Below are positions 5,135-64,000 of a stretch of DNA of 64,000 nt, piece by piece. Made by a program: the position numbers and the translations under genes. A model generated the notes under the pieces. That model saw only the letters and a program-made list of their open reading frames with translations, did no database searches and had not been told where the DNA came from. The number at the start of each line of letters is the position of its first letter. The stretch's first letter is position 1. Source of the stretch: Thalia democratica (taxonomy: Eukaryota); assembly GCA_965202585.1 (NCBI GenBank), contig OZ241829.1, positions 73,160,001 to 73,224,000 on the forward strand. Reading direction: 5' to 3'.

Positions 5135-5340
5135 AAAATAACCGTACGTAAAACATTTGATCAACCAAAAAGCTAGCAAAATTGAGAATCTTCGATGTGA
5201 CGTAACTGTTGGTGTTCAAAGGAATTATGCTTAGTTATGACGTCACATTTGATTTGATAAGGTCATTGTCGGTGTGAAGTCATTGATTAATCTCTTCACT
5301 GACCTGCGACATAAAAAGACTAAAAGTTTGTTTGCTAAGT
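5135..5340 (-). promoter_or_regulatory. CRE-containing promoter-like module P1, likely promoter of the 517-aa gene
   Basis: TGACGTAA, TGACGTCA (5238-5245) and TGAAGTCA in a block homologous to 7370-7560 and to 11220-11304 plus 12463-12580. It lies upstream of the minus-strand ORF. Confidence 0.5.
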
Positions 5341-5964
5341 CACAAAAATTTGATAGAGTTTCAAAGCTGTAAGTCCAATTAAGCAAAGTAAAGTTTTAGT
5401 TTAAGTCACTGATAATAATGGTATATGTATATATTAAGAAACTAACTTCGATTTAATTAAATTATAATAAACATACTATCGCAACAGCTCTTTTAAACAA
5501 AGATAATAATAAAATATTAATGTTACAATAATACAAAATTGTTTCATCAGTAAAACTGCAAAGGTTGCTAAGCATCGTGAGTCAATATTTCTATAAAAAA
5601 TATGAAGAGAAAGTAAAAGTATCAATTTGCAAATACTTTTATATTTTAGTATAAAGTAAAAGATATAGCTTTTAAAAAGGTGTAGCATGTTCGTTACAAA
5701 TAAGCTTTTTTTGTACATCTTTTTTACAAATTACAATTATATTACCTGTTTGAAAAATTATACAAATTGAAACACTATATGCAGCACTTTTGATTGTTAC
5801 CAGCGTCTAAACGCGTAAAACCATTTAATTCTGTTTTAGTATAATAGTAATATGGAGGTAAGTCTTTTAAAAACTTGTATTACATTATTTAGTAGACCAT
5901 TAATTATTATTTATATTACACTTTGGTGTTCATTAAAACAAATCTAACTAATCAACTGTTAGTA

Positions 5965-6747
5965 CAGTAACCTCTCGGATCTTTACGCATTCGTGACGTT
6001 ACGCACTCTCGTTTAGTTACGCATTTCAGAATTCTATAAAATTCAGAAAATAAAAATTTTGTTTTTTTTTTAATATTGCAAAAATTAGGTTTAATGTATA
6101 TTTTTAAATTAAAATATATTTTTGAATGCTAACACACCTCTCTATATCTTTAGACTTTGTAAATTTATGTTCGTTGACTAATTGATAAACATTTAGTTAT
6201 ACCTCAGTATATCAGAAATTTTGTAAACAATAAGAGATTAAATCAAAATTCTGAAAAAAACATGACTGTTTTTAATAATAAAAGTATAATGAAATAATGA
6301 GATTTTAAAATACAAAGAAATAATACAGCAGTCTCACATTATATATTAATAAACACCATTTTATATTTGTAAAGAAATGTTTAATTATAAATTGAATTTG
6401 CTAAGTAGAATAGTGTATAAATGTCACATATAAATGAAGACAAAGATAATTTTTACTTATTTTTAAAAAAGTAAAATTATTTTTTCTCGTATTGTTATTT
6501 TATAGAAATTCAAATCCTTTTTTTTTTTAATAAATGTATAGCTTTATCTGTTGTTTTCATATTTATAAATGAAGTAAACAAATTGTTCAAAGTGGGAAAG
6601 TGCCCAGTCTGCTTTTAACTAGAAGCAATATTAAAAAACAGCCATTTTAGTAAGTATATTTGGTACCTCTCGTTTCTTTACGATCTTTCATATCTTTACG
6701 CACTTTTTCTGTGGACACAATGTGCGTAAATAAGTGAGAGGTTACTG
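5965..6747. mobile_element. Non-autonomous Tc1/mariner-superfamily (pogo/Tigger-like) MITE
   Basis: 12-bp perfect TIRs CAGTAACCTCTC...GAGAGGTTACTG, flanked by TA on both sides (5963-64, 6748-49). No ORF. Confidence 0.85.
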
Positions 6748-7230: not shown

Positions 7231-7560
7231 ATCTGGATAATTACAAGTATGTGATACTGTATGTTAAGAGTAAAATAACACACTAAAAGATCATGTATAA
7301 TTAATCGTACATCAAACAAATAACTAACATGATACCAATCAGCATAATGACGTGGCCTTAATATTAATCGTACGTAAAACGTTATATCAACCAAAAGACT
7401 AATAAAGTTAACAATCTTCGATGTGACGTAATAGTTAGTGTTCAAACAGAATGTGCTTAGTTATGACGTCATTGTTTTTTTGATGAGCTCATTTTTGGTG
7501 TGACGTCATTGATTACTATCTTAAATTACCTGTGACATAAAAGTACTTCAAGTTTGTTTG
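7231..7560 (-). promoter_or_regulatory. Promoter-like module P2 with candidate non-coding first exon
   Basis: TGACGTCA at 7464 and 7501, TGACGTAA at ~7426. Minus-strand donor ccagat|GTAAGT at 7230 is conserved in the duplicate (donor at 11083). Confidence 0.5.
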
Positions 7561-9900: not shown

Positions 9901-11304
9901 CTGTAAACTGTTAAAAAATTTCACAACAAGTAATAAAAGTGAGAATTTATATTGCATTACATTTATTTAAGAGCTTTGTAAGCGGGGATATTAGAAAATG
10001 AATCTACTAAATCTTTTATGTAGTATGTTTAAGTACAATATTTAACGCGAAATTAGCGGGAAGTGTTCGATATAGCGCAGAAAATTACCTAGACTGCTGT
10101 TGCAAAGTGTGAAAAGATTAACAAGCCATCCACAAAAACATCAACCAAAGTTTGAACAATCAGAACTCCTTAGGATGCAAAGTATATAGTGAGAAAGAAC
10201 TTTAGAAGGTAAAAAGATACAGTTTCTATTTGCAGCTGGAGTGAAAAACTCTGCTATAAATGAAAAGAGATAAAAGGTACGTGCCATTACGAATGCTTTT
10301 TTCACAACTAATATGACGTTATAAATTTAACTAAATGACGTCACAAACTTATAAGGTATTTAAAAGTTGAAGTGACGACCAGTTATAATATAATAAACAA
10401 AACAAGTTGTTTGAAAAAGTATGATGTCGCAATCTTTGAAACTTTGCACAAGTTTGATATGATTAACATCGTACACCGTAACCTTGAATTTTAAGCTTGA
10501 AGTTATTTGTTTTAATATAAGACAGCAAAGTTAGTTTCCTATTTCAAAAACAACCAAATACGATTTCACGTTAGAAGAAGATAAGTAGAATTAACACAAA
10601 TATAATGTATCAATAAAAATTTGCAAATTTTAGTATATAATATATATGGTGAATATTTTTTAGATTTTTTTTTAAAGTTAGATATTAAAGTCTTTTAAAA
10701 TAAGGTTTTTACTTTTTTACGATATGGTAATACTTTGTGGTTTGGCGTATTGAACCGCAGCTAACGAAGACTAAACAAAAGAAGACAACTGAAGACAAAA
10801 CGAAATATCTTTGCTTTCTAATAAGTCTAGTCAATTGTTATGTTTAGTATAATATTAACAACTAGTACAAATTGTTATGTCCAACTGTTTTTTAAAACTA
10901 ACTTCAACTAGCAATAAAATCATTTCAATATATAAAGTTAGAACGTAAGTTGAAGTGTTTATTATAGAATAATACCAGAGTTATCTACTACAAAACTATA
11001 TCAATTGTAGTAAGACACCTATGATACATACTATAAAACATAAAACTTTACTGTAACTCAGTTATTTTTAATATCAAACTTACATCTGGATAATTACAAG
11101 TATGTGATACTATATGTTTAGACTAAAATAACACACTAAAATATCATGCATATTTAATCGTACATCAAACAAATAACTAACATGTTGCCTTTCAGCATAA
11201 TGACGTGGCCTTAATAGTCACCGTACGTATAGCATTTTATCAACTGAAAGAATAAGCAAGTTAACAATCTTTGATGTGACGTAATAGTTGGTGTTCAAAC
11301 GGAG

Positions 11305-12462
11305 CGGTAGGACTTTTTATGGGTAGTATTTTTTGGGCACTATTTTATGTGTAGAATTGCTGCAATAGTATTTACATGCTACTGCAATTAAGTTGCTGCA
11401 ATTAAATGAAAAATAATTTACTGTATATGCCTTATATAAATATTATGGATAGTTTTTGTAGTTTTAAATTTATAAACAAACAAATAAAAACAAAATTGAA
11501 CAAAAATAAACTAATAGTTTGATTTAACTGTACATTTATTTAAATTCTATTTTGTAAACTAACAAAAATAGTGGCTGAAATTATTAAAATATAATGGATT
11601 ATTTTGTCATTTAACATTTAATAAAGAAAAAAAATTTGAATACTTTTGAACAAATTGTTTAATTTAAAAGTATATTTATGTAAATTATATTTCAATATTA
11701 ACAGAAGTAATGGCTTGGCGGCATATTATAAATCTTTTGGATATTTTCATCATTTAAGATTTTATAAACAAAAAAAAATAAAATTGAACACACATAAACC
11801 AATTGTTTGATTTATAGTTGTATATATGTAATTTATATTTAGTAAACTTATAAAAGTAGTAGTTTGGTCTTGTGTGTACTATTTTATGTGCACTATTTTA
11901 TTTGTAGAATTGCTTCAGTCAATTATGTTAATAATTTGATATGATTTCATTTAAACTATGGGTAGTATTTAGATGTTGCTGCATTAAATAAAAGTAAAAT
12001 ACTGTCTAGGCCTTATATAAATATTATGGACAGTTTTTGTATTTCAAATTTATAAACAAACAAATAAAAAATAACTTGAATATACATATACCAATAGTTT
12101 GATTTATTTGTAAATTTATTTAAATTGTATTTTGTAAACTAACAGAAGTAGTGGCTAGACTTATTAAAATATTAAATTAAATAAATATCCAAAATATTTA
12201 TAATATGCCAAGCCTTTACTTCTGTTAGTAATAAAAAATATAAATTAAATTATTCATACTACTTCAAAAACTATTCATAATATTTATTTAAAGCCTATAC
12301 AGTATTTTTTTTTTTATTTAATGTCAGCAACTTTATTGCAGCAACATGTAAATACTAACCATAATGTTAATGACATCACATCAAATTATGAGCAGAATTG
12401 ATTGCAGCAATTCTACACATAAAATAGTGCCAATAAAATACTACCTATAAAAAGTCCTACCC
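11305..12462. mobile_element. Non-autonomous Mutator-like (MULE) DNA transposon
   Basis: ~60-bp TIRs (GGTAGGACTTTTTATGGGTAGTATTTT...AAAATACTACCTATAAAAAGTCCTACC) and a perfect 9-bp TSD CAAACGGAG (11296-11304, 12463-12471). The uninterrupted homologous site is at ~7440 (gtgttcaaacagaatgtgc). Internal direct and inverted repeats. Confidence 0.85.
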
Positions 12463-15400
12463 CAAACGGAGTGTGCTTAGTTATGACGTCACTATTTTTA
12501 AGATAAGGTCATTTTTGGTGTGAGTCATTGTTACTCTCCTAACTGACCTATGACATAATAGTACTTAAAGTTTGTTTGGTTTTACTATTATCTGTATGGT
12601 CTGTCGTTTAGTACTATTAACGTTCCATGCAAAAGTAATTACGTGCAGAATCCACGTTTAAAATAAAATTATACAAAACTGATACATAATCTAAAATTTT
12701 AGCAATTGGAATTTTAAATCTGAATAAACAAGTAGGAAAATTAAACTCATAAAAAAATATAGTGATTAAGTTCTACAAAAACAGAGCTAGTCTAAATATA
12801 ACACACATTGAAACGGTTAAATATCAAAACCAGTATTAAGAAATGTAAATAGATCAGATAAATAATTTTAAAACGTTTTAAGAGTTATGCTACCTGGCTG
12901 GAAAAAATTAAGATTAAAACTAATGATCTAGCGGAACTGTTTTTTTTTTTTCAAGTTAAGATTCGGCTGAATTTGGATACTTTTACATAGTTTATTAAAT
13001 AAAAATACAGCCGTATACGGATTCGGTATATTATTTTGTTTTTAATTTTACAATTTTTAATTTTTTAATTTAGGTCAAAACAAAAGTAACGCAGTATTGA
13101 AGGGATAAAAACCAAACTAATCAGAATCTTACCAAAAAAATACTAATTATCAACACTGCCTGTAAGTTTAACTAAACCGACAAAAGTAACATAGTATTAG
13201 AGGTAAGAATTTAAAAAATGTTTTAATAAATATGATCCAACGATATAAATGACGAAGAAAATCAGGTGCGAGGATGTAAAACTTCAATGACGTCTCAGAC
13301 CGTATTTCCTTTCACAGTTTGTTTTCCAGTTTTCTAGTTTTGTTTTACAGTCGAATAAAGCCATTTCAAAAACTCAAAGCAAGGTGATATCCAAGAAAAA
13401 CTATCAGATAACGAGCAAAATATTTGAGAAGTGTTTTAATGTTGGGTAAGCAAAAAGTTAAGTGTTTTTGAAAAGTATTGATAAATATTAAGTCTTTTTA
13501 TGAAATAATAAAAAAAAGTAAAAATAAAAACATTACATGTCTAAATAAAGCTACAGTGCACACAACCCTTAGTTATTAAGTTATTAAAAATTATTAAGTT
13601 ACAAAAAAAGTCAAATCATCAACAGCTAACCAGATTGTTTATATTGCAGCTTTTATGTTGCTTTTCGCCTTTGCTTCATCTGATGCTTATAAATTGCGTC
13701 TTCAGCATCTAAAAAATATATGTTAGTAAAATATATAAATGTTTTATAAAAATTAAGAAATACTTGTGAAATTTTTTTTTGAAATTTTGTGATACTCCTA
13801 AGTGATTTAACGATTTTTTCAAAATGCTATAAAACAAGTAGCTCATTTAACATTAAAAAACGATTTTTCAATTTTCCATTTTATATTATAAGTTTAAGCA
13901 TAGACTACGGTTTATAAAATAGCTTTTAGCTTTTTTGATTTTGTATCTGACCCCAACAACTTTCATCGTTAATCATTTTAAATTTAACTCCACAAAAATC
14001 AAAAATAAATCTACAATGCAAAATCAAAAACAGAACAATATAAATTTTATTCTAACAAATTCATGTTACAATATGAGATTCATAAGCGAATAAAGAGTTT
14101 GGAATTTTACTCTGTTATAGTGAAACAACAATATGAAGGTTGGTATTCAGATAGCTACTAAATATATAAAAACTGCATTGTTACGTCACAAGCGAACTTT
14201 GCGTTAGAGGCTTAAAATAAACGTAAAAATAGTCAGTAACCAAAAAAACGCTCATGTATAAACAGTTGTCAGCTCAGAGTAAGAATAAAATAATTAGGGA
14301 AAAACAAACCGCAAAGTTAAAAACCATGTTACTTTACAAGCCGCTTTTGCGGTTGTTAAGCAAGTTTATTTGTAATATTTTTAAGTAAGATAACATATAG
14401 CGGTACTTGCCGGCTTATAAATACTGTTTATAACAAACATCTGAACAGTCATTCAATTAAACCAGTGCTTTTAGGTGCATAAATTTTAAAAGTATATTTA
14501 ATTCTGAGTACGAGCGTTTGTGAGATTGTGGTCTTTTGTCATCAGGTTAGAGAACTTTAAAATAAGTCAAGAAAATTTTCGAGAAAGTTTTTACGAGATT
14601 GAATGAAATACATTAAAGTTTATTAGTAGACATCAGTCAAAAGATCGAAAGAATTTTGAAAGAAACACAAGTTTAACTTTATCACTTTGCAGGAAAACCA
14701 GGTAATAAAAATTAAAAACATTTTTATTTAGCTTTTAAACTAATTTCGAGCATAAATTTATTAATTTAAAAAATAAATCCAAATAAGATGTTTAAAAACG
14801 TAAATTAATAAATTAAATGTTTAAAATAGTTGTTTTGCATCAAAAGAAAGTTGAAGTTGAAACGTTATATCATATACATCTATACGAAATTTTATTAGAC
14901 TAATTATTATATATATTAGTACAAATAATAATGTATAAAACCTTGCTTCACAAGTTTAGATACTGATAAAGTTATTAGGAATTTTTAAGTTTTAAATGTT
15001 TTATGTTTGTACAAACAATATTTACAATTTTCTAATTGAAGCAATAAGTTTATACAGTTTTATTTTATAGAACACTTACAGACCATAAATATTTATACTT
15101 TATTAATTTGAAAATTTATTTAATTTTAAACTTCTTTAAGATCATTTCATTCTAGATGATTTTTACTAAGAACTAGCTAAAGTTTGAAAATTTAAGAAAT
15201 TTTTAAATGCTTAAATGTAAACGTATGTACAATCGGTTATGATTAAAATATATTAATAGAAAAAAATCTGATTATTTAAGGTTGGATCATCAAAACAATT
15301 TTTAACTTTTTTTTGGTATAAAAAAAGTTAAGCTGTAGTCCTAGAGGGCCTATACAATTTTGGTTACAAAGCTTAGTAAAAAATATTTTGAAATTCTATT

Positions 15401-15739
15401 TAATTTTATATCAAGCACACAGTAGTTGTGGTTAAGTCATCATATCAAACAGTTTCATTTAATTTTTACATGTTTTATTTAAAATTTTAGTTATTCCAAG
15501 AATCACTTGACTTTTTTTTTTACTTTTTTAACAAGCTAAGCCTGCATAACACCTTTTATAATTAGTTTTGCCCGTTAACTATAGTACTTGTCCACCCTTA
15601 ACTACAATCAATAAAAGCGAGATTTTAAGACTAATTTGAATATTTTTTAGAGTTTAGTAAGCATGAAAATCGAAATGAAATTTTTTTTTATTATATAGTA
15701 TAATACTATGAAATATATAAACTAGTATTAGTAACTCAC

Positions 15740-15832
15740 TGTTCCGTTTATTCTCATGTTGTTGAAGGTTGTTCGGTTGTAGCTTCTTAATGATGATGGC
15801 TCTTTCAAGGACCACGTCGTTGTATAAATAAG
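15740..15832 (-). other. Candidate small spliced exon (paralogue of 9773..9900)
   Basis: cttacAG acceptor and GTGAGT donor; strong similarity to the 9773 exon. Confidence 0.45.
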
Positions 15833-16299
15833 CTGTAAGAAATATAAATTTAAAATATATATAATATTATTATCGAAATTAAAACATTGATTATGCGCAC
15901 TTTATTTTATTTTCAAATCTTTTTCGAGAAAGTAAGCTTTAAACTCTAAATTATACATAAGCGTAATGTATAATGTTATTATAGGAGAGTGTGGTTTTAA
16001 ATTAATTAATAATATTTCTAATAATAAATTCTCATCTACTTGAAAATAACATTTTGATAAGGTGAAATCGTAAAACTCAAAATTTATACTTAACCTTTGT
16101 AGTCGTATTACGAGTTCCTAGCGGTTTTTTACCCGAAAGGCTAAAAAACTAAGACTACATATAAAACTAAATTATAATACAAATATGAAACATAAATTGC
16201 ATCTAATAAAGAATAGGAAGCTCACTGACATAGAAAGTAAAAACGAAATTTAGAAAAAATAAACCGAAGGCAACACTTATATACACTTTTTTCAATTCA

Positions 16300-16420
16300 G
16301 TGTGAAAAAGTAAGTACAACAGTGATGATATTTTAGACGTCACAGACAGCTTTTTACAGGTGAAATCGTTTTTCACACGCAAAAGCTCAAGGTAAGTGTT
16401 TGTTGTTGGGCCGTACAAGA
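16300..16420 (-). promoter_or_regulatory. Diverged A-type promoter-like module
   Basis: ACGTCACAgacagcttttta...tgttgggccg aligns with ACGTCACAagcggctttta...tgttgggccgcgc of the A-type modules at 41960, 49990 and 58215. Confidence 0.4.
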
Positions 16421-17074
16421 CGGCTTTAAAAATATTCAAAAAACAACCAACTGGAAGAAACAATTAGTTCTAATACCGTTACTTAGATTACAACTTGTGT
16501 TGTGATCGCGAAATTTTGTGAAATGTGAGTGGTGATGTCACGGTTTGAGATTGATCAATTATTGAAGCATAAAAATTTGAGAGAAACTTTTAAGGTTCAA
16601 CAATTCGAAGAAAAAGGTTTTTTTTGAGGCGCAGCTGTTTGTCTTTCGAGTAACTAAGAAAGTTGCTTGTTTACTTTTATGTTTTCGAGCTAGTACTTCA
16701 AGTAGGTTTAATTTTCTATGAAAATTGTGTTACATTTTCGTTCCATTAATTTGAACTTTTTAACTTTTTTTTTGCATAACCACCAACTTGGCTGACCGTA
16801 ACTTTTAAACTGGATTATTTCAAAGTTAAAAATAGCTTTTATTTTTGTTTTTACACAAACGAAGGTACGGAAATATAAAAGCATTATAAATATTTTAAAC
16901 TTTTTCAAAGCAACAATTTATAGTTGATATTTATAGCTCTAAATAAAGTATCAAATTATCAAAATTAATTTGAAGTTTTTTCACTTATTATACTCTAAGG
17001 TCATTTAAAGACATATACAAGTTTTTATAACGATGAAGCAAGTAGATTTAAAAAATTCTTATTTGAACTTTTAA

Positions 17075-17216
17075 AAAGGGTTAATCATTCCAGTTCGATC
17101 ATCAGATCACAAGTTTTTCGGTTGTTACTGACTGATGAGTACTATTAAGGACGAAACCGGTCTCATTCTACCGAAGTCTTGTGGTCTGATGAAAAAATTG
17201 GCATGATCAACCCTTT
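17075..17216 (+). ncRNA. Minimal type I hammerhead ribozyme (core 17127..17167) at the apex of a ~142-nt rod-like hairpin
   Basis: CTGATGA (17132-38); helix II GTAC-TATTAA-GGAC (one A.G mismatch); GAAA (17153-56); palindromic minimal helix III ACCGGT; GTC cleavage triplet (C17162); helix I TGA/TCA. Flanking arms 17075-17122 and 17170-17216 form 38 Watson-Crick plus 3 G.U pairs by manual alignment. Confidence 0.8.
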
Positions 17217-17338
17217 GTTTAATACGATGTTATAGTTTTAAGATTATTTAAGTTCTATTACAGATCTAGCTTTACTGACTGCAACTCGCACATTAAAAAA
17301 TTTTAAATACTATTTATCAAAAAACTGAAAAAATAACC

Positions 17339-20885: not shown

Positions 20886-21076
20886 AATTTAATAGTAAAA
20901 CATATAAATATACAAACGCAGATTGTCAACGACAAAGAGTGGTCTGAATCTGAGTGGCATTGTGAAAGCGGGCGCTCGTGTGTTATGAATTGTGACGTCA
21001 CGATTAACTAGTTTCAGTAAATGATGTAAGAATATGAGAAAGGTTTTACTGTGTTCGATTATCGGTTTACTTTCTT

Positions 21077-26369: not shown

Positions 26370-26539
26370 TTCGTGCGACAAAGTCATCGTGCCAAAATGT
26401 CGCTGTGCTAAAATTTCGTCGTAAAATTGTGATGATGTGAATAAGTATCGTTGTACAACAATGCTGCCGTAAAAAAATGTCGCCGTGCAAAAGTGTCCCC
26501 TCGTGCAAAAGTGACGCAGTGCAAAAGTGACACCCACCC
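26370..26539. mobile_element. Right-end fragment of the same family as 21077..22244
   Basis: gtgcaaaagtgtcccctcgtgcaaaagtgac...gtgacacccaccc, identical to the terminus at 22244. Confidence 0.65.
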
Positions 26540-51700: not shown

Positions 51701-54700
51701 AAAAAAAAAACTGAAAGGTAAATTAATAAAAGAAAAACAAGAAGAAAATTTATGGGTAACAGTGATAGTAAAAAAAAATAAATTAATAAAATATTTGATA
51801 AAAAAATTTAACCTGTGCAAAACTTTTTTTTGTGCAACAGTATCTTTGTGTATTTTTGTGCCCTAGTACAATTTTGTCCCCTCGTGCAAAATTGACAGAT
51901 ACCATTCAAACAGACTTGGGAGTGATTTTAACGTCACATTAGAAACTTTAAATAGACTTGTGAATGATTATGACGTCACACTAGAATTTTTAATCAAGCT
52001 TGTGAGTAATTCAACTCACAAAATTTTTACGACATAAAGTAAGGACATTCAAAAATAAAACATCAATGAATATGAACACTGAACATAGATAAAATGAACG
52101 TAAATAACATGTACACAAAAAACATGCATGGTATCAAAATATAAATAAGCGAGCTCACAGAAAAAACAATTCCTGCCAGAACCGCAACCCACTATGGAAT
52201 CCCTGCAACCTACCAAGGAGAAACAAAGTCAGCATTATCTTGTTGCAAAATAGGTTACATATATATATATATAGTATACAAAATAGGTCAAAAACAAAGC
52301 TTTCTAAAGAGTTCTCGCTTGAATGATTACAAAGTGAGAAAGAAATTGTTCGTTCACATAAATAACGACGGTGGACAACTAAAAGTCATAATCACTCGCA
52401 AGTCTGTTTGAAAGTTCTGGTGTATGTAAAAAGAATCTCTATGTGTCTGTGTAGATTATACTAGGCTAAACTCTTTAAAATTATTTCCGTAAAGATAGAT
52501 TTATTATCGGCTATCATTTCAATGGGAACTAGTTTTGTACACAGTTAAAGTTTGACCATTTCAAACAAAAACATTTAGTACAATTCAGTACTTTAAAAGT
52601 TTTTAATAGTAACAACAGAAGGGATTTGAACAACGAAAGTTAGAAAAGATGCGAAACAATTAACAAATCGAAAAATTTAAAGACACTATTTTTAGTGCTG
52701 CTCAAATTTCACATACTAGCAATACATGTGATTTGTTTTGCATTTACTGATTTGAATAATTGGGTAGTTTACTGCAGAGTGTTTGTAATAACTAGTTGTT
52801 TAAATAATAATTATATAAAGTATGTGTTTTGTGGGCTTATTATTTATCTACCAAACTAAAACTGTTTCACACTAAACTATAATAACGAATCAAAAACATT
52901 AAATCAATAAGAATAAAAAGCAAGTAAAACTACAACTTTTTAAAATAAATTTATACAGGAAATGACAAAATATTATGAACATAGTAAACGGGGATGATTT
53001 TAATATATATACTAAGATTACTAAAGTAGTCCGTATTTTTCCCTTTTGGGAAGTATATCTTAGCAATTATGTGGGTAATAAGCTGCAAAAAAGGGGCGAA
53101 CGGTGTCGAGTAGAGTTGGTATGGCAAAACTGCTTTGCAGAATAGTGTTTTCCACTAGTGTTAACAATGATGTGACGCAGTGCTTGTTAGTATGCAGAAA
53201 TTTACAATTTTATTTATAAATTATATTGAACGGTAGTCTTTTTAAAAGCTCGGAGAAAAAAGTGATTGCTTTTTAATGTTTGAAAAATCCCGATGGATAT
53301 CATAATTAAACAAATTATCTTAATTTTACTTTTATAAATTAGCGAAAAAACATCACAAGTAGTAGTTCTTAACGGTTCTTATATGTTCAAAGACAAAATC
53401 TTGCAACAAAAAACTTAATTGTGATAACTTGAATAATATTGATTATAGATATCAAAACTTACTTGAAGTTTTTGCGTTATCACACCTACTGATTCCCAAG
53501 ATTGACGCTAGCTTGAAGAATTTTTGCTTTCTCCCTGCAGTTGTGGAAAAATTATCATTTTTAAATATTCAGCTTCAAGTAAATTCTAGCTTTATATATC
53601 ATTTGAGGATTACAAAGTTTTGACAGCTAATCTATAAGTGTCTTACTTTAATAGATAAAGTTTATTGTATTATCTAAGAAAGGACTTACTTATTTAATAA
53701 ACTATTACAGCTTTGGCTTTAAAAAGTTGTAAAAATTATATAAGGTTAGATTTTTAGTCGTTAGGAGTTTCGTTGAAAACATAAAAAATTTAGTTAACAA
53801 ATAAAAAATTTCTCAAAGTAATTTTATATACCTTAAAGCTGCTTTGAATTTCTGTTATTAAAAGGTGCAAAAAACATCAAAAATAATAATTATGAGTAGG
53901 CCGAGCGTAAAAAAGATGGCAGCGACGTTTTAGCGAGTTAATTTTTAACTTAAAACCGCTACAACATGAGCTTAAAGTTTAGTGACGTCACAAAACTTCA
54001 GCTCGAAGAAAAAGGTGTTTGTTACGTCACAATTGACTTTTGCTTCCGAGCAGCCGAAGCGGTGAAGCTTCAGAGTTCAGATTTGAAACAGCAAGCTGGG
54101 CCGCGCTTGGCGACCCTTCAAATTAGATATTTAGCAGAATGCTTTCTAAAACCAAAGCAGGTAGCACTTTTTATTTTAATTACACTTTGAAAATTGCAGC
54201 AACGCGTCTTTTTAAGCGTAATTTTTTATAGAACTCTAAATTTTAAGTGTAATGTTAGTTTTTGTAAGTTTTTTGTACATTTTTTATTATAAAAATGGTT
54301 AAAAAAACACAAATTTTTAGTTAAGTACAACACAATTTTAATAAACTTTTAAATTTTTTTAACAAATTTATTTTATCAGCTAAACTCCCACCTAGAAAAG
54401 CAATTTAAATAACGATTTTGTAAATAGTATCTTATTGTGCTACGTTTTTTATGCTATTACTTATTAAGCTTTTAGTTTTAGTTTCAGTAAAAGAATATAT
54501 TTAATAAGTTGCCATATTAATATTTAAAGTTTGATGTAAAAATAAGATTAAACGGTAGTCTTTTCTAAAGCTTAGAGAAAAGAGCGATTGTTTTTAAAGT
54601 TTGAGAAATCCCGATGGATATCATAGTTAAACAAATTATCTTGATTTTATTTTTATAAACTACCGAGAAAACATCACAAGTAGTAGTTCTTAACGGTACT

Positions 54701-57124
54701 TATTTGACCGAAGACAAAATCTTGCAACAAAAAAATTTAATTGTGATAATTGAATTACATTGATTATAGATATGAAAACTTACTTGGAGTCTTTGCTTTG
54801 TCCCACCAACTGATTCCCAAGATTGAAGAACTTTTGCTTTCTCCCTGCAACTGTGGAAAAATTAACAGTTTAATTCATTTAGTTTTAAATAAGTTTTAGC
54901 CTTATATTTAGTTACAGATAATTTAACTGATCCATCTTTGTCAAAAGCAGATTTGTATTTTGTTAGTAGGTTCTTTTAGTTTAAAGTTCAACATAGATGA
55001 AGATAAAAGTGAACTGAAGTTTGTTTATACACTCTTATCTCGAAACTAACTAAAATGTAAAATATAAGTCAACCTTTTACGGGATTCAGCAGAGTTTCGA
55101 AGGTATAAAAAGATTCGTGTGACGCAAATGACTAAACACGAGAGAAGAAGCGAGATGAGTGAAAGAGACATAAAGAAGCATTCGAAACAGCACTCTCGAA
55201 GGAGCAGCCTACAAATACGGTTTATAATACTGAGATACCAAAAACATTGCTTAACAACTTTCAATTGTACACCGTTTGTCAACCGTGACGCATGTTTAAT
55301 GTATATATAATTAAGTGGTAACAATCAAAAAACTCCCGTTTCTTCACAGTGAGTGACGGTTAGGTGTAAAGTAATGAAAACTGCCTGACCAATTAAGACT
55401 TTCAATACAAATACCTCAATAAAACTGACAGATGACGTCATTAGCCATTATGACGTCACACCTTAAACAGAATTGTGAATAATAAAAGTATAACAGAGTA
55501 ATAATAAGCTTTTTGTTTGCGCTTAAGTGAACTACATGGTAACTCACAAAATTGTTATGACCTGAGCTATTGACATTCAAACACAAACATTAATGAATAT
55601 GAATATGTAAATTATATAAAAAAATAATATGAATGTAAAGAATATCAATGACATCAGTATAAATTTTTTGAACAAAAAGAATACTAGTGATACTAAAACT
55701 TTAATAAGCTTAATAAAAATGAAGTCCGTGTAAAGGATGTGACGTGTAAAAGGGACGTAAGAAAGTGCCTGGATACGAAAAACACAAAAAAAAAAGATAT
55801 ACTTGAGTTTGTATTGAAATGCAATAAATATTGAACAAAAACTTAAGACAAAAACAACTAAAAGTTTTTGATATAAATTAGAAATAAATTTTGATTATGT
55901 AAACAGTTATAGGTTTCATCAGAAATTACTCAATTTAATTAATTAGTATTTTAACTAAAATTATCATACGTACAAAAATAAAAGTAAAGTAAACAATAAG
56001 TAAAATTTAACAAGCGACAAAATAGACAAAAATATTTTTAGTTTTATTTTGTTAAGCACTTAATGATTATCATCTAAGCGTTTCAGAATCCTTTTTTGTA
56101 CAAACAATTAGGCCTAATTTATACAAGCAACAGTGTGTTTATAATCTAATATAATCTGTTAAATATAATCTTTATAAGTTGTTATAAGTCTTGTTTGTCG
56201 CTTATTCTATTTTACTTATTGTTTGTCTTACTATTAATTTTCTACCGAGGCTTATCTTAGTTGTATAACTAATTAAATTATAGTTATGTAATTGTAAACA
56301 ATTAGTCTATCTCTAGTTAATTTTCTTGATGTCTAATTTTAATAGTTAAGTATTTTCTGATGAAACATACAAATGTTTTATTACTTAAAGCTTATTTTTC
56401 AAAATTAGTTGCTAAAAAAGTAGTTTTAATGGTTTGCTGAAATTTATTTTACTCGTTTGCTCAATAAGTTTGTTTTGAGTGAATGTAGTCTAAGTTTTTG
56501 TTTTATAACTGTAGTACTATAAAAATATTTGGCAAAAAAAAAAGTACAATTTATATGAAATTTGAAACTCAATTTAGATAAAATTTGATTATAATTAGTA
56601 AGAGCGGTCTTTTTTATGCCCTATGGAACAGTGTTTTGCATCGACTGACAATTAGATGCGAAAAGTAGTGCGCATAGTAGCTTTTTGAAAAACTAAAGGG
56701 GGGACGATTACTGTTTAGGTTTCTTAAAAGTGGTTGTTACGAAATTTGGCCTTGGAAGTCCTGATAAAGATCAAAGCTACAAGCTACACAAATGTACTAA
56801 ACTTCATTTGTTTAAAATCATTTAGGATAAAACATCTTAAGTAGTAATTTTCAGTGAGCATAATTAATGAGATATGTTTGCTTACGCAGCATGTTTTATA
56901 AATAAAGAAAGTTTACTTGGAGTGTTACTATAACTGCATCCTTCAACATTGATGTCAGCTTGAAAAATTGTTGATTCCTTCCACGAAAACAAGCTGCCAT
57001 CTTCTGTTAAACTGTTGAAAAGTTAACATTTGAAATACCTGTTTTAATACAGTTAATAGCTTTTTCATTCGTTTAAAAATAACGAAACTTCTACCACTAA
57101 TGTGTAACTACTTTAGCTTAATAC

Positions 57125-57550
57125 ATAAATTTAAAACTAGAGATTTTCTTTTAATTAGTATTTAAATACCTACTGTATTAATTAATTCTACTACTAACGT
57201 GTAAATATTTTATCTTAATAAATAAATTAAAAACTAGAGATTTTCTTTTAATTAATATGAAAATACCTACTGTATTAATTAATTCTACCACTAATGCGTA
57301 AATATTTTATTTTAATAAACAAATTAAAAACTAGAGATTTTCTGTTAATTAGTATGCAAATACCTACTGTGTAAATTAATTCTAATACTAATGTGTAAAT
57401 ATTTTAACTTAATAAATTTATTTAAAAATAGATTTTTTCTTTTATTTAATATGCAAATACCTACTGTATTAATTAATTCTACTATTAATGTGTAAATATT
57501 TTATCTTTATAAATTAATTTAAAATTAGAGATTATTTTTTAATTAATATG
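57125..57550. repeat. ~97-bp tandem repeat, five copies (two at ~49210-49340, one at ~41265)
   Basis: Recurrent aaaactagagattttct...aaatacctactgtattaattaattcta...taatgtgtaaatatttt with ~97-bp period. Confidence 0.8.
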
Positions 57551-60499
57551 CTGTACAATCCAATTACAACACACGTCACCACTGCTTACGACATATAAAT
57601 ATAACTTAAAAACATCTTGCTTGAAACCTTCAGTTGTTTTTTAAAAGTATTTTGGTTTAACAACACGTAACACAAAAGATTTATTTTTAATTTTTAAATA
57701 ATAATCGTAGAATTCATTTAAACAGTATGTGTAAGTCTAACAAAGTAGAGATAATTTAAAAAATTCAATGTTGCTTAAAACAAAACTTAATACTTTCATT
57801 GTGTTCTATATTTAACGATTAAATGGTAATTAAATACTACTTTAGTTATAGTTTGACTAAGCAGCTTCAGTAAAACATGTAATAATTTGATTAAAAAACG
57901 TATTTCTCAGTATTAATTTAGCTACTTTACAATATTTGTAAAAACATCATGTTTAAAAGTATAAATGAAATATTAACTATTAATGTCAAAATTCTAATTA
58001 CAATGACTATATTGCAAAATATTTCCGTGTTGCATTAATAGATTGTTATAGAAATATTATTTTCAATTGTTGTAGTCATACATAACATTTAAAAAACTAT
58101 TGATAAAACATTGAGAAACTTGTCTGACGATACTAAAACATTTATCCCGTTATTTTTCTACAGTTTTTACGTTATAAGTAAACTAAAAAATCTGAAGAAT
58201 TACTTATGTTAAAAACCGAGCGGAAAAAAAGATGACGACAATACTTGAGCGCAGGAAGTGTGCGGTTTTTTAAATTAAAACTGCTGCTTCACAAAACTTA
58301 AGTGAATTCACAAAACTTCAGCTGAAAAAAAAACTGCTTGTTATGTCACAAGCGGCTTTTACCTCAAGAACCGAAGCGTTTTAGTTTCACAGAAAGCATG
58401 TTGGGCCGCGCTCGGCAGGCCTTAAAATATTTGGAATTAGATAAACCAGCAATGAGATAATTGTGTGTGCTGCCACTTTGAACCTTACTCATACTATGAA
58501 GGCGTTCTATCGTTAGTGACGTCACTAAAAAGTCAATTTAATATATGACGCAAGGAAAAAATGTGAGAGAGTTTTTTACGCTGCCTCAGTCTACCTGCTG
58601 TTTGGAAATTTTAATTTTTTATATGATTAAAAGATAATAATAAACATAGCAATTAAGATGAAGTTGTATATGTAGTCAAGATAAAATAAATTAAACTATT
58701 AATGATACTAAATTTAAATCCGTACGCAGGCTAGTATGAACAAGTACAAAAATTAAGTTTAAGCATGTTTTTCGGCTGATAAAAATAACTATTAAAAGTA
58801 ATTTTAAGCATGTATTTTGGCTAATAAAAACAAATATAACTATAATCGTTAAATTTGAGTAACAGAAGTGTGAGATAGATTTATTTGACGCAGATGGCAA
58901 AACGAGTGAAATTATGTAAATGTAATCGTCAATGGATCAACCATACCACAATATTAGACTTACACTGGACGAGCCGACGACGGTCACTATATAGTTTTCG
59001 GTGTATAGGAATCAAAAAAATATATGTAATTGGATTACCATCTTCCTCACAGCGAATAACACCTTCTCTTCCTCGATGGCTGTCATAAATGGGTGTCAGA
59101 AAAGCATGGGTCGTCACAGAGTGACACTTTAGCACGTAGTGACACTTTGGCACGGAGTGACACTTTATCGCGGAGTGACACTTTGGCACGGATAGACCAT
59201 TTACCAAGGGTCGTCATTTAAGAACGAAGCAACACTAAATCACGGAGTGACACTTTAACACGGAGTGGCACTCTCGCACGGTGTGAAACTTTGGCTCAAA
59301 TTGACATTTTAGCTCGGTGTCACTCCATTCTAACACTTATATCGTTTAAAAAACGATTATGTTTGATTTGACAAAAACATACCGAATGCTTATGTAATAA
59401 AAAAAATGTTTAGTATTTCAAAACAAAAGATAATCATTATTAAAATAATATTTTGTGTAAAAGTGTCACAAATTTAAGCTAAGGAATCGAAGTATATATA
59501 TAAACAATATTTCAAACAATTTGACTTATAAACTTTTAAAGCACATTAGGGACAACGATAAGGTATGCTTTTGAATCGAAACCTAAATTACAAAATTATT
59601 AGTTGTGTTACACCTAAATTGAGTCATATAAACATCATGTTTATGTTCAAGTAATTTAAAATACTATCTTAATAATAATACTACAATAAATGTGTTTTTT
59701 CTGTAGCGTATTTTATTGATGTACCACCTATTGTATGTAAACTAAGTAAATGAAAAAAGCGGTGTAAGTAGAAACTATTACTATAAATCTAAATCAATAA
59801 TAAGCAAAAATATTTAATGGATGTAAAATAAATTTTAATGAAATAACTTATGTACAATGACAATAAATTAACTAACCAGAGGGTTCATGCTAATGTTCCA
59901 TTTTCATAGTTTCTGATTACAAAAGACGTAGTTGATTTTTTTTGTTGACCCGTCTCTTGACTGTTGAAGTAAAGTTTGTTGAATAATTGTTAGTTTATAT
60001 AAGCTTTTTTATTGACATTTTAGAACTTATAGAACTACATTATGAATGTGGATCGTAAGCTGGTTGTTTGCTTCAACGGTTAAAAGTAGAAGTTAACAAA
60101 CGAAATTATTTTTTCAGAGTTTTTGTTAATAGTAGTAGTACTGTACAGATAACTTAAAATATTCCATTTTTAATAACAAAAACTTTGTTTTAAATTTTAA
60201 GAAAAAAAGTTTGGAATGTTTATTTATTGGTATCAGTTAGCACAACGCAGAGTAAAGTTGCTAAATATTAAAACAAAATATCACATAAATTTTATTTCTG
60301 TATAATGATTTATGAATGTTTAGTTAAAAATAATTATGTCATTAAGAGTCAAGTGTAAAAGTTTGTATTAAGGTTTAAATTTAAAATTACATAAGTTAAT
60401 TAATAAGGTAAAAAGTGATTGTAGTGTCACATTAAAACCTTTTAACGGACTTGCGAGTGTTTTTGACATAACGACAGAAATTTCAATCAGAGTTGGGAG

Positions 60500-61060
60500 A
60501 ACTAGTGACGTCATATCAGAACCTTTAAACAGGAAAACGGGTCAAATATGCACCAAGACAAAACTACACCAGGTTACTAAATTGCACGAGGGCGCAAGAT
60601 TGCATGGAAATAATTTTGCACGAAGACAAGCTTGCACGAGGGGACAAAATTGCACGAAGACAATTTTGCAGGAGGGTCATTTTGCGAGAGAGTGAAAAAG
60701 AAAACACAAAAATAAAACTAAAAAATAAACAAGTAAATAAAAAAAACAAGAAGAAAAGGTTATGGGTAACAGTGATAGTAAAAAAAATGAAATTAATAAA
60801 ATAATTAAAAATAAAAATTCAACCCGTGCAATTTTTTTTTTGTGCAAAAGTATCTTCGTGTATTTTTTTGCCCTAGTACAATTTTTTCTCTTCGTGCAGA
60901 TACCATTCAAACCATTGACAGATACCATTCAAACAGACTTGGGAGTAATTTTATCGTCACATTAGAACCTTCAAACACGAGCTGTGAGCAATTGTTACGT
61001 CACATTAGAAACTTCAAGTAGACTTGTAAGTGATTATGACGTCACACCAGATTTTTTTAA
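60500..61060 (-). promoter_or_regulatory. B-type module built from tandem ~42-bp CRE-containing monomers; paralogues at 30030-30100, 44340-44840, 51925-51990
   Basis: Repeated [T(G/T)ACGTCACAT(T/C)AGAAC(C/T)TT.AAA...GACTTG.GAG] units followed by a conserved downstream block. Confidence 0.5.
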
Positions 61061-64000
61061 TCAGGCTAATTCAACTCACAAAATTGTTACGACATGAAGT
61101 AGTGACTTTCAAAAATAAAACATCAATGAATAAGAAGATTGAACATAGATAATATGAACGTAAACAACATGTATACAAATAACATGCATGGTATCAAAAT
61201 ATAAATAAGCATGCTCACAGAAAAAATAATTCCTGCCAGAGCCGCATTTCACTAAGGATAAACTAAGTCAGCATTATCTTGTTGCAAAATGAAATACATA
61301 AGATCAAAAACAAAGTTTTCTAAAAAGTTCTCGATTGAATGATTACAAAGGAGAAATAAATTGTACATTCACATACATAACAACAGTGGACAACTAAAAG
61401 TCATAATCACTCGCAAGTCTGTTTAAAGGTTCTGGTTCTGTTGAAAGAATCTCTACGTGTCTGTGTAGACTATACTAGGCTAGACTCTTTTAAATAATTT
61501 CCGCAAAGATCGATTTATTATCGGCTATCGTTCCAATGGGAACTAGTTTTTGTTCACAAATCTAAGTTTAACCATTTAAAACAATAACAAATAATACAAT
61601 ACAGTACTTATAAATTATTTGTAAGTAATAACAGAAGGGAGTTTAACAACAAAAATCATAAAAGAAGCAAAACAATTAACAAATCAAAAAATTTAAAGAT
61701 ACTATTTTTAGTGCTGCTCAAATTTCACATAGTAGCAATATGTGTGTTTCGTTTTGCATTTACTGATTTGAATATTTGGGTAGTTTACTTCAGAGTGTTT
61801 TAAATAACTAGTTGTTTGAACAACGCTTATATAAAGTATGTGTTTTGTGGGTTTATTGTTTTTCTACCAAACTAAAACTGTTTTACGCTAAACTATGATA
61901 AAGTGTCAAAAACATTAAATCAATAAGATTAAAAAATAAGTAAAACTATAACTTTTTATAATAATATCATAAAATAAACGAATAAAACAGTATGAACATA
62001 GTAAACGGGGAAGGTTTCAATATATATATATACGATTACTAAGGTAGCCCGTATTTCCCTTATTTGGGAAGTATATCTTAGCAAGTATGTGCAAAAAGGG
62101 GCGAACGGGGTCGAGTAGGGTTGGTATGGCAAAACATGCTTTGTGGAATATTGTTTTCCACTAGTATTAACAATGATGTGACGTAGTGCTTATTAGTATG
62201 CAGAAATTTACAATTTTATTTATAAATTATATTGAACGGTAGTCTTTTTAAAAGCTCGGAGAAAAAAGTGATTGCTTTTTAATGTTTGAAAAATCCCGAT
62301 GGATATCATAATTAAACAAACTATCTTAATTTTACTTTTATAAATTAACGAAAAAACATCACAAGTAGTAGTTCTTAACGGTTCTTATATGTTCAAAGAC
62401 AAAATCTTGCAACAAAAAACTTAATTGTGATAACTTGAATAATATTGATTATAGATATCAAAACTTACTTGAAGTTTTTGCGTTATCACACCAACTGATT
62501 CCCAAGATTGACGCTAGCTTGAAGAATTTTCGCTTTCTCCCTGCAGTTGTGGAAAAATTATCATTTTTAAATATTCAGCTTCAAGTAAATTCTAGCTTTA
62601 TATATCATTTGAGGATTACAAAGTTTTGACAGCAAATCTATAACTTTTTTACTTTAATAGATAAAATTTATTGTTTTATCTTAGAAAGGACTTACTTATT
62701 TAATAAACTATTACAGTTTGGGCTTTAAAAAGTTGTAAAACATATATAGATAAGATTTTTAGTTGTTAAAATTGTTGAAAAAATTTAATTAACAAATTAA
62801 AATTTCTCAAAGTAGTTTTATATACCTTAAAGCTGCTTTGAATTTCAGTTACTAAAAGGTGCAAAAGACATCAAAAATTATAATTATGAGTAGGCCGAGC
62901 GTAAAAAGATGGCAGCGACGTTTTAGCGCGCTGATTTTAACTTAAAACCGCTGCTACATGAGCTTAAAGTTTAGTGACGTCACAAAACTTTAGCTCGAAG
63001 AAAAAGTCGTTTCTTACGTCACAAACGACTTTTGCCTCCCAGCAGCCGAAGCGCTGAAGCTTCAGAGTTCAAATTTGAAACAGCATGCTGAGCCGCGCTT
63101 GGCGACCCTTCAAATTAGATATTCTGCAGAATTCTTTCAAAAACCAAAGCAGGTACCACTTTTTATTTTAATTTAATTTAATTTAAATTGCTGCAACGCG
63201 CCTTTTATGCGTAATTTTTAATAAAACTCTAAATTTTCAGTTTTGTGTAATGTTAGTTTTTGTAAATTTTTTGTACATTTTTTTGTTATAAAAATGGTTA
63301 AAAAAACATATAATTTTTAGTTAAGTACAACAGAATTTTAATAATTAAAAAAAAAATTTTCACAAATTTATTTTATCAGTTAAACTCCCGCCTAGAAAAG
63401 CAATTTATATGTGAATTTTGTAAATGGTGTCTTATTGTGCTACGTTTTCTATGCTATCACTTTTTAAGCTTTTTAATTTTAGTTTCAGTAAAAGAATATA
63501 TTTAATAAGTTGCCATATTAATATTTACAATTTAATGTAAAAATTAGATTAAACAGTAATCTTTTTAAAAGCTCAAAGAAGAGAGCGATTGCTTTTAAAG
63601 TTTGTGAAATCCCGATGGAGATCATAGTTAAACAAATAATCTTGATTTTATTTTTATAAATTAATGAAAAAACATCACAAGTAGTAGTTCTTGACGGTAC
63701 TTATTTGATCAAAAACAAAGTCTTGCAACAAAATATTTGATAATTTTAATAATATTGATTATAGATATGAAAACTTACTTGGAGTGTTTGCTTTGTCCCA
63801 CACTGATTCCCAAGATTGACGCCAGCTTAAAGAATGTTTGCTTTCTCTCTACAACTGTGGAAAAATTATCATTTTTAAATATTTAGCTTCAAGTAAGTTC
63901 TAGCTTTATAATTTATTTGAGGATTACAAGGTTTTGACAACTAATGTATAAGTATTTTACTTTGATAGATAAATTTAAAAGCAACATTAAAAGTTAACAG

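Follow-up and report, generated by a model that had tools for sequence, protein, structure and literature searches.

CRE/ATF sites (TGACGTCA) occur in promoters and enhancers, where they are bound by CREB/ATF bZIP dimers. A cellular CRE promoter normally carries them as a single-copy element beside its gene, typically within about 200 bp of the transcription start and often with a TATA box downstream; the YY1 core-promoter motif (AAGATGGCGGC) is expected recurrently just downstream of the start site. Tandem units that each bear a conserved short promoter motif are known from the clustered protocadherins and from the TCR V-beta segments (a CRE-like decamer), and in nematode 21U-RNA (piRNA) clusters CTGTTTCA lies ~40 nt upstream of a U-initial 21-mer, the units being spaced by hundreds of bp and found on either strand. 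Tandem non-coding arrays dense in promoters are likewise already known: at the zebrafish miR-430 locus, whose product is non-coding, a promoter is reported on average every 1.8 kb across ~0.6 Mb (10.1101/2021.08.09.455629). The hrs of baculoviruses combine palindromes with CRE-like and TRE-like bZIP sites and act as enhancers via host bZIP factors; they occur as blocks of 0.4-0.9 kb with a repeat unit of ~72 bp, scattered through a viral genome dense in coding sequence (PMC13513840).

The window (the whole stretch of DNA analysed, 64,000 nucleotides) holds ~59 kb of AT-rich animal DNA that consists of nested tandem duplications, with a short CRE-centred module roughly every 2 kb. Self-BLAST, the site map and the spacing of the sites place this array at 5139..64000 (no strand assigned), and it continues past the right end of the window. 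The explanation that we favour, with a probability of about one half, is that the modules are bZIP-bound regulatory elements, likely promoters of short non-coding units, which were tandemly amplified. A previous sequence-only reading had described a window-wide, co-oriented battery of promoter-like modules; its observation is confirmed, and its interpretation is partly supported.

Perfect TGACGTCA sites number exactly 31 and span 5238-62982, where 0.32 are expected and dinucleotide-preserving shuffles yield at most 2; the earlier figures (at least 31 against ~0.3) were therefore accurate. The many half-matches reported with them are also there (TTACGTCA, n=11; TGACGTAA, n=3), and altogether 71 ACGT-centred full or half 8-mers fall into 50 clusters. 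Pairs ~20-45 bp apart had been claimed: 18 of the 50 clusters do hold two to four sites at start-to-start spacings of 18-42 bp, but two further spacings measure 76 bp. The sites are palindromic TGACGTCA or TGACG/CGTCA half sites, as the definition of a CRE demands, and they are both commoner than chance and conserved relative to their flanks, in a moderate sample of non-independent pairs. The copies of TGACGTCA are not independent either; collapsing the duplicates leaves about 9-10 families with unrelated flanks, which is still far above 0.32, and the k-mers common to different families are only extensions of the CRE itself. The CACAA that was said to follow often on the + strand is recovered in ACGTCACAA, with 13 occurrences on + versus 4 on - (0.49 expected). 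No perfect site lies in the non-array DNA of the window, i.e. 1-5.1 kb with a 517 aa ORF, a 3.8 kb LTR-flanked element and a 1.16 kb TIR element, in which we estimate that about 5-6 would be expected at array density. Related organisms (L001, L002), represented by ~10 kb of DNA, showed no site, which is uninformative either way for this species.

Modules follow each other at a median spacing of 2.15 kb (1.98-2.36 kb in 12 of 28 intervals), and with a recurrence of ~2 kb the expression "amplified battery" is a fair description. The basic period of ~2.1-2.3 kb per module is clearest in the B/C sub-array (14181..27010, +; 14-27 kb), which comprises seven ~2.2 kb mini-units anchored at 14181, 16335, 18687, 20794, 23011, 25744 and 26907 (+). 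Self-BLAST resolves 38-64 kb into three tandem units of 8-9 kb with 80-90% identity, all on +: unit 1 (37997..45753) with modules D, decayed H, B, E, F and G, unit 2 (45754..54921) with D, H, B, E, G and B, and unit 3 (54922..64000), truncated at the window end, with H, decayed B, E, F, G and B. This higher-order unit, which holds four to six modules, is younger than the basic ~2 kb spacing; smaller and older local duplications lie upstream of 38 kb (5-13 kb and 17-21 kb). Blocks of 96-100% identity between duplicates reveal gene conversion. In old copies nearly all of the sequence has diverged past alignment and the surviving part is a module of 150-250 bp, slightly GC-richer, with one to four CRE sites (TGACGTCA or TTACGTCA), often paired 18-42 bp apart. 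The array is old, and its sites have outlasted substantial divergence, given that the units are 80-90% identical and that the LTR pair of an inserted element is 99.2% identical.

The grouping into several related module types that the sequence-only reading proposed is supported. The A family has three CRE-like sites and an AGGTCA...TGACCT pair. Its first copy (5198..5282, +) carries TGACGTAA, TGACGTCA 40 bp later and a decayed TGAAGTCA, with AGGTCA/TGACCT half sites and a CATAAAA box after the CRE-like sites; the second (7348..7508, +) has four sites (TGACGTGG, TGACGTAA, TGACGTCA and TGACGTCA); in the third (11201..12528, +) TGACGTAA (11277) and TGACGTCA (12484) are separated by the TIR element (11306-12461, with a 9 bp duplication CAAACGGAG). 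The CATAAAA box, 30-35 bp past the last site, is conserved in all three copies, and the A module reads like a compound promoter. The module at 10314..10343 (+; TGACGTTA and TGACGTCACAA, 22 bp apart) shows weak kinship to the one at 33172..33201 (+), an inverted pair of two perfect CREs, also 22 bp apart. C modules are found at 22981..23018 (+; an inverted pair of perfect CREs, 30 bp apart), 25718..25751 (+; TGACGTCA and TTACGTCA, 26 bp apart) and 26877..26914 (+; TGACGTCA and TGACGTCT, 30 bp apart), and single perfect CREs with unrelated flanks at 20993..21000 and 24886..24893 (no strand assigned). A G module (30035..30084, +), inside an older partial unit copy (29752-31007), is built of a 42 bp tandem unit with one site per copy. 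The module with the perfect CRE at 31015..31022 (-) is related to the G/F family in inverted orientation (it scores 40-41 in reverse, where the null reaches at most 15); most modules do face one way, as had been stated, with this exception, and the co-orientation is mostly trivial because it follows from direct tandem duplication.

With seven or more copies of ~215 bp, the B family can be recognised as a repeat. In the B module at 18601..18790 (+) AAGATGGCGAC is combined with a CRE-centred palindrome (TTACGTCA) and a GC-rich hairpin; its recent paralog at 20708..20897 (+) has a 24+24 nt palindrome with TGACGTCA at the centre. All five copies of AAGATGGC, the supposedly general YY1-like component, are on + and belong to this family, where they read AAGATGGCGAC or AAGATGGCAGC and precede the nearest CRE by ~70-85 bp; the motif thus amounts to effectively one occurrence, and a recurrence of the YY1 core-promoter motif at many independent promoters, which a general role implies, was not found. 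A search for a TATA or initiator at a fixed distance across families gave none, a conserved TATA-like box being present in the A family only. GC reaches 35-36% within ~100 bp of the modules versus a background of 26% (range within the window 21-35%), and the rise is symmetric about the modules, so that, with no fixed-distance TATA or initiator either, the modules point to no direction of transcription. Two simple tandem repeats accompany the modules (no strand assigned): the 18 bp CACAGAGTGACACTTTAG with a GTGAC core (42863..43060, 50879-51285 and 59115-59317), each time ~600 bp past an E module, and the 16 bp CTTTTGCACGAGNGACA (21074..21201, 22104-22234 in inverted form, 44453-44512 and 60612-60670), always a few hundred bp or less from CRE modules and with a period indivisible by 3.

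How well the motif survives in diverged copies can be read from the paralog alignments, in which per-base identity is 95.8% within the CRE versus 87.2% elsewhere. The perfect 8-mer is retained in 67% of 42 ordered comparisons for the CRE (~21 unordered, partly non-independent paralog pairs) versus 41% for 1033 central-CG control 8-mers, and the CpG of the CRE in 86% versus 72% for other CpGs. Gene conversion could preserve sites without selection, a caveat on this statistic. When whole ~2.2 kb mini-units from 14-27 kb were used in nhmmer, the module alone was found in non-adjacent units. Retention, module-only alignment and the site-free gene and transposons point to constraint on the motif. 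Outside the window, the B-module pattern had 0 matches in metagenome contigs; in viral contigs it matched 3 times, each time singly and in isolation, and these contigs have a GC of 48-51% and lack an array-like CRE density.

The enrichment, the structure of the duplications, the retention of the motif above matched controls and the lack of any coding or structured-RNA signal are direct results, whereas it is our inference that a bZIP dimer binds, that the modules act as promoters and that each unit yields one transcript. The sequence from about 5.1 kb to the right end is an old tandem array that kept duplicating, with modules that are putative cis-regulatory elements bound by a CREB/ATF-type bZIP dimer. 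Each module would most likely be the promoter or promoter-proximal enhancer of a short transcription unit, presumably non-coding or with a very small ORF only. Unequal crossing-over and gene conversion would amplify and partly homogenise the units, while selection would maintain the binding sites. Some modules have decayed, which is a counter-point to this explanation: in unit 1 both CREs of the H module (39773..39798, +) were lost by CpG transitions (TGATGTCA, TGACATCA), and in unit 3 a B module (58303..58348, +) is reduced to TGAATTCA and TTATGTCA.

Alternatively, the array may be inert repeated DNA, in which the CRE descends from an ancestral unit (a macrosatellite or a transposon-derived promoter fragment) and became abundant by amplification and gene conversion, with no host function. 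All sites do lie within duplicated sequence, conversion tracts reach 96-100% identity, several modules are decayed, the B family is a recognisable repeat of the size and copy number given above, and transposon promoters can carry similar sites: the LTR of the inserted element has a CCAAT and a TGACGTGT half site. We nevertheless hold this explanation to be rather unlikely, because a perfect 8-mer is common to families with unalignable flanks, and neutral decay that leaves flanks unalignable should have erased the 8-mer as well; its retention above matched CpG 8-mers argues in the same direction. Nor do the modules look like parts of a mobile element. No TIR, LTR or target-site duplication marks module borders (an inverted-repeat scan of three B modules showed neither a TIR nor a target-site duplication), the modules sit within long collinear duplications, and a Pfam scan of 149 stop-to-stop ORFs of at least 54 aa revealed no remnant of a transposase, RT or integrase. 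The one convincing Pfam match, a cold-shock domain, lies in the LTR-flanked element (33715-37530, 3.8 kb); marginal matches concern CRA and Dbr1_C (E 0.003-0.006). The sequence-only reading had considered that the modules might belong to a known transposon, and within the window this is not the case, since both recognised transposons are without a perfect site and no transposon ends are found at modules. The diagnostic combination of terminal repeats or target-site duplications with remnants of transposition genes is absent from the modules of the window.

Almost no coding capacity had been noted between the modules, and indeed only 9 ORFs reach 90 aa and coding constraint is not detectable. 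A tandem family of small protein-coding genes (of the micro-exon or short secreted-peptide kind), each with a CRE promoter, would suit the ~2 kb spacing, and a segment of the B module resembles a short exon, with an acceptor (TTTATAG/), AAGATGGCGAC with an ATG and then GTAAAC; by our count its two paralogs differ by ~six or seven changes, about evenly synonymous and non-synonymous. This explanation is nonetheless very unlikely. Frames open for at least 35 codons in two paralogs, the length to which our judgement applies, show no coding constraint: their substitutions are even over the codon positions, and non-synonymous changes far exceed synonymous ones. Other B copies have lost the ATG or the reading frame, indels between copies of the 450 bp element that has the longest shared ORF cause frameshifts, and no Pfam family is represented. 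Splice-signal hexamers are symmetric between the strands, which likewise leaves the proposed minus-strand micro-exons without support. As a candidate class, the micro-exon or small secreted-peptide cluster was rejected for want of coding constraint and frame preservation.

Could the units instead encode small structured RNAs of the snRNA, SL RNA or miRNA type, each with its own upstream CRE? Downstream of the B modules come ~100 nt with a GC-rich hairpin and an A-rich box at their end, the B palindromes fold to -38 to -44 kcal/mol, and a miRNA-like hairpin is kept in two paralogs (7101-7190 and 10952-11041). Against this stand the Rfam searches, which returned nothing at gathering score and three sub-threshold, chance-level matches at E up to 1, and a tRNA search of the window, which returned none. 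The regions downstream of the B modules have folding z-scores between -1.85 and +0.17, and RNAalifold of 8 B copies gives a weak consensus (-8.1 kcal/mol, covariation term +0.69) without net covariation. A hairpin scan of both strands detected B palindromes, repeat-derived hairpins and the one conserved pair only, no hairpin recurs in every unit, and the most conserved part of the B palindromes is the central CRE, not the arms. Small structured RNAs are therefore a highly improbable product of the array; among known classes, snRNA, SL RNA, snoRNA, tRNA and ribozymes were rejected, with neither a covariance-model match nor a covarying structure.

The modules might also serve a gene outside the array, as enhancers or as alternative promoters with short 5' exons, similar to clustered alternative first exons. 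One candidate is the one clear gene of the window, the 517 aa ORF at 1897-3450 (-): its 5' side faces the array, which starts 1.7 kb upstream of its ATG, and on the minus strand this ATG is preceded, at a distance of ~65 nt, by a good acceptor (TTTATTTCTGTAG/AG). That the modules are the sole conserved parts of the units would also agree with such a role. However, neither strand has a conserved splice donor past the modules, ~28 alternative promoters would be unusual for one orphan gene, and the strand bias of ACGTCACAA favours +, so that we consider this explanation quite unlikely.

Our favoured explanation, amplified bZIP-bound promoters of short non-coding units, can be taken further, to a new flavour of promoter-dense non-coding locus with 28 or more mini transcription units driven by CREs, spaced at about 2 kb along more than 59 kb of an AT-rich animal genome, in which the promoter is conserved and the transcribed sequence drifts. 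We regard this extended proposal as unlikely. If true, the locus could respond to a stimulus with a burst of transcription of non-coding RNA or small-RNA precursors, form a transcription hub as at miR-430, or act as a sink for bZIP factors. The lncRNA, piRNA-precursor or micropeptide cluster suggested by the sequence-only reading, and its possible undescribed locus type, are candidate readings. Should the modules be active, the locus would be a clear case, from an invertebrate, of a tandem array whose transcription factor site alone is kept by selection while the transcribed body decays. It would then bear on the origin of promoter-dense non-coding loci (transcription hubs, small-RNA precursor batteries) and on whether the act of transcription or factor binding, not the RNA sequence, is the selected function, and CREB-dependent induction could be studied in it as an easy natural system. 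With inert modules, the array would be an ordinary macrosatellite that has diverged, and would teach only that motif counts in duplicated DNA need collapsing before enrichment is claimed; if the density of TGACGTCA is similar genome-wide, the locus is not special.

Compared with the known systems, the array resembles cellular CRE promoters in that TGACGTCA and half sites (TGACGT/ACGTCA, TTACGTCA) are clustered and paired in GC-richer islands and retained in diverged copies, but about 30 modules over 59 kb with no detectable gene are unlike them. With nematode 21U-RNA clusters, composed of many tiny autonomous units, it shares a short common motif and a region poor in protein-coding genes; a piRNA cluster of the nematode type was rejected, as the motif is TGACGTCA and not CTGTTTCA, the spacing is ~2 kb and the modules face mostly one way. 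The B modules, as CRE-centred palindromes, recall baculovirus hrs, whereas the window has next to no ORFs and units of ~2 kb. Like miR-430, the array consists of tandem ~2 kb units, each with a putative promoter region. The miR-430 units, however, are very similar to each other and have pre-miRNA hairpin triplets and TATA-type sharp promoters; here no hairpin is present in every unit, the CRE is what the units share, and they have diverged except for the module. Finally, the units of protocadherin and TCR V-beta arrays hold long conserved coding exons, of which none is detectable here, but as in those arrays the units are tandem and mostly co-oriented, and the motif is kept while the rest diverges.

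The array that extends from about 5.1 kb to the right end of the window can be read as a series of tandemly amplified cis-regulatory modules to which bZIP factors would bind, and which would most likely be the promoters of short non-coding units; to this reading we assign a probability of roughly one half. An exact count gives 31 perfect CRE sites (the bZIP/CREB site TGACGTCA) between 5238 and 62982, against a mean of 0.32 and a maximum of 2 in dinucleotide-preserving shuffles, which bears out the abundance claimed by the sequence-only reading. The GC content is 21-35% with a CpG observed/expected ratio of 0.92, and the window is therefore not CpG-depleted. ACGT-centred full- and half-site 8-mers number 71 in 50 clusters. 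In 18 of the clusters there are two to four sites, their starts 18-42 bp apart, or 76 bp in two cases. The strand bias also proposed for these sites is real, because the counts are unequal: the half site TTACGTCA occurs 11 times versus three times for TGACGTAA, and ACGTCACAA is present 13 times on the plus strand versus four times on the minus strand. The YY1-like component suggested at the same time shrinks to five plus-strand copies of AAGATGGC, found only in the B family of modules, where the nearest CRE follows some 70-85 bp downstream. A search for co-motifs among the module families yielded nothing common beyond extensions of the CRE itself; with one representative per family, the only k-mers enriched across families are GTGACGTCAC, TATGACGTCA and TCACAA.

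The flanks group the 31 perfect sites into nine to ten families: A (5238, 7464/7501, 12484); a family of 10336 and 33172/33194; B plus C (18687, 20794, 23011, 25744, 26907, 42084, 50114, 54022, 63014, with 14181 and 16335 as weaker members); two single-site families at 20993 and 24886; G and F, with an inverted relative at 31015; D (38184, 45941); E (42261, 50290, 58517); and H (47545/47563, 55433/55451). The A module contains three CRE-type sites, one of them enclosed by an AGGTCA...TGACCT pair, and all three copies carry a CATAAAA box 30-35 bp past the last site; farther along, two copies have ATGCAAAA and a TACGTG...CACGT pair in common. These features look promoter-like. Inverted CRE pairs are found in the C, H and 33172 modules. 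The B modules are CRE-centred palindromes and form the strongest hairpins in a window-wide hairpin scan; their centre is the most conserved part, so that a symmetric protein site fits better than an RNA stem. Extended palindromy was rejected as a general property of CRE sites, being confined to those of the B family. A few hundred bp from many modules lie 16 bp and 18 bp tandem repeats with GTGAC cores, and for the 16-mer a coding role is excluded by period or frame.

Self-comparison of the window resolves the region from 38 to 64 kb into three copies of a higher-order unit in tandem (37997-45753, 45754-54921, and from 54922 up to the end of the window), which are 80-90% identical; at 29.7-31.0 kb there is a fourth copy, partial and degenerate. 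Smaller duplications are found upstream, where 17332-18782 matches 19525-20888, 7039-7981 matches 10890-12987, and 9232-9906 matches 15172-15838. Anchored on modules, the spacing has a median of 2.15 kb and falls within 1.98-2.36 kb in 12 of 28 intervals, with an especially regular run at 14181, 16335, 18687, 20794 and 23011. We read the block as an old tandem repeat of about 2.2 kb, of which larger pieces would have been duplicated later. Expansion of a 97 bp tandem repeat, to 4.8 copies, is peculiar to unit 3 (57089-57551); units 1 and 2 have about one copy each (41241-41294 and 49174-49345). Two short GC-richer segments, 27781-27863 and 28478-28558, share 90% identity, and the ORFs of 84-114 aa that they overlap have no Pfam match; from one of the segments comes a strong hairpin at 28501-28590 (-32 kcal/mol).

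Inside the higher-order units there are patches of 96-100% identity that look like gene conversion, and the whole array might be inert repeat DNA whose uniformity is maintained by conversion, an account that we consider rather unlikely. Taken together, the paralogous alignments have a per-base identity of 95.8% in CREs versus 87.2% elsewhere. Of 42 ordered comparisons that start from a perfect CRE, 67% have an equally perfect one in the paralog, versus a retention of 41% for other 8-mers with a central CG (n=1033), and the CpG of the CRE is retained in paralogs at 86% versus 72% for other CpGs. This excess argues for constraint with moderate force, given a small sample of overlapping pairs. 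More telling than these statistics is the outcome of nhmmer searches with whole mini-units of about 2.2 kb, in which only the module is detected in non-adjacent units and the rest has diverged past detection. Moreover, families with flanks that can no longer be aligned still hold the perfect 8-mer. The H module of unit 1, at 39773-39798, is dead through two CpG transitions and the B module of unit 3, at 58303-58348, has also decayed, as would be expected in a large redundant family.

That the units are small protein genes appears quite improbable. Pfam searches with the eight largest ORFs and with 149 ORFs of at least 54 aa identified a cold-shock domain (CSD) within an insertion only, and frames open in two paralogs have substitutions spread evenly across codon positions, with non-synonymous changes dominant. 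Alternative genetic codes were rejected likewise: stop reassignment extends ORFs equally in all six frames and no genes emerge. The longest shared ORF, an LRR-looking one of 85 aa at 53366-53620, lies inside a non-coding element of about 450 bp with four copies (53200-53664, 54522-54907, 62206-62670 and 63523-63977); one pair of copies agrees at 99-100% and the rest at about 86%, and the ORF is regarded as non-coding because indels of 2, 7 and 11 bp among the copies shift its frame.

Small structured RNAs as the products of the units are more doubtful still. ARAGORN found no tRNAs in the window, and no Rfam family reached its gathering score there, the three sub-threshold matches having E-values of up to 1. 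Folding of the approximately 100 nt downstream of B modules was not significant in single-sequence folds, RNAalifold detected no covariation among eight copies of this region, and the window-wide hairpin scan likewise gave no support above chance level. Together with a 3' hairpin, one B downstream copy contains a GT donor and an Sm-like AGAUUUGA, but donor and Sm-like site are not kept in the other copies, and an SL RNA or snRNA was therefore rejected for this region. Two individual hairpins may be mentioned. The first, of 90 nt at 17101-17190 on the plus strand (-33 kcal/mol, z -5.5), has a hammerhead-like core (CTGATGAG...CGAAAC...GTC) with a loopless helix III; it scores 26 bits with Rfam HH9 versus a gathering score of 52, and the core is probably a degenerate or chance match. 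The second is miRNA-like and conserved in two paralogs on the minus strand (7101-7190 and 10952-11041), about 270 bp from an A module, with identical arms, a differing loop and z-scores of -4.1 and -3.3; no further copy exists within the window.

Splice and poly(A) hexamers exhibit no strand asymmetry in the window, and the modest rise in GC around modules (35-36% vs 26%) is symmetric, so that no direction of transcription can be assigned. The minus-strand micro-exons of the sequence-only reading are not upheld by these hexamers, which are equal on both strands.

Perfect CRE sites are absent from the non-array DNA, namely the first 5.1 kb and two inserted elements. The first 5.1 kb includes a Lys/Asn-rich ORF of 517 aa (1897-3450, minus strand), without a Pfam domain, which is the only ORF in the window that could plausibly be an ordinary gene. 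With its 5' side this ORF faces the array, and some 65 nt ahead of its ATG, at about 3516 on the minus strand, is a good acceptor; the modules could thus form a cluster of enhancers or alternative promoters serving a flanking gene, which we hold to be unlikely. Promoters of short non-coding units remain our preferred reading. The larger insertion (33715-37530; 3.8 kb) is flanked by direct repeats of about 623-640 bp with 99.2% identity, and its LTR carries a CCAAT and a TGACGTGT half site. Its interior is one long frame with in-frame stops at 34885-34887 and 35851-35853, which encodes an animal Y-box-type CSD; no gag or pol was found in the insertion. In a Tara Oceans contig, a homologous CSD ORF of 544 aa lies directly 3' of a Ty3/gypsy RT-RNaseH-integrase ORF, and the insertion resembles a gypsy element with an internal deletion, from a lineage that has a CSD ORF at the env position. 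The smaller element (11306-12461; 1.16 kb) is foldback- or MULE-like; it has TIRs of about 60 bp (95%) and sub-repeats in its interior, and is bordered by the 9 bp target-site duplication CAAACGGAG. Its insertion separates two CRE sites within an A module.

The closest relatives of both the CSD ORF and the 517 aa ORF are on contigs of Tara Oceans marine metagenome assemblies; the latter has seven relatives with 31-53% identity, all from ENA, and the one contig that was traced is of this origin. The Y-box type of the CSD points to an animal as the source of the window, AT-rich and with little representation in annotated databases. Among the metagenome contigs searched there were no matches to the B-module pattern and no loci for the 517 aa protein, exact look-ups of the window ORFs returned no record, and scans of viral contigs yielded no related locus, only isolated single matches on contigs of unrelated composition. 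A distant CSD homolog led to ENA contig ctg149792_8x_l, which is vertebrate-like (GC 39%, CpG observed/expected 0.26) and was left out of alignments and searches after this composition count. By motif counting only, the 180.8 kb contig IMGVR_UViG_2706795366_000001, of a composition unrelated to the window, carries 10 TGACGTCA within a terminal 2.8 kb and 11 within a separate stretch of 12.9 kb; it may be an animal virus. Stacked CREs are thus a feature of large DNA viruses too.

Among described loci, zebrafish miR-430 comes closest to the array in architecture: promoters recur there every 1.8 kb across 0.6 Mb (10.1101/2021.08.09.455629). In contrast to the array, all units of that locus have hairpins and its promoters are of the TATA type. 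For repeated modules that join palindromes and CRE sites, the closest analogue is provided by the hrs of baculoviruses (PMC13513840).
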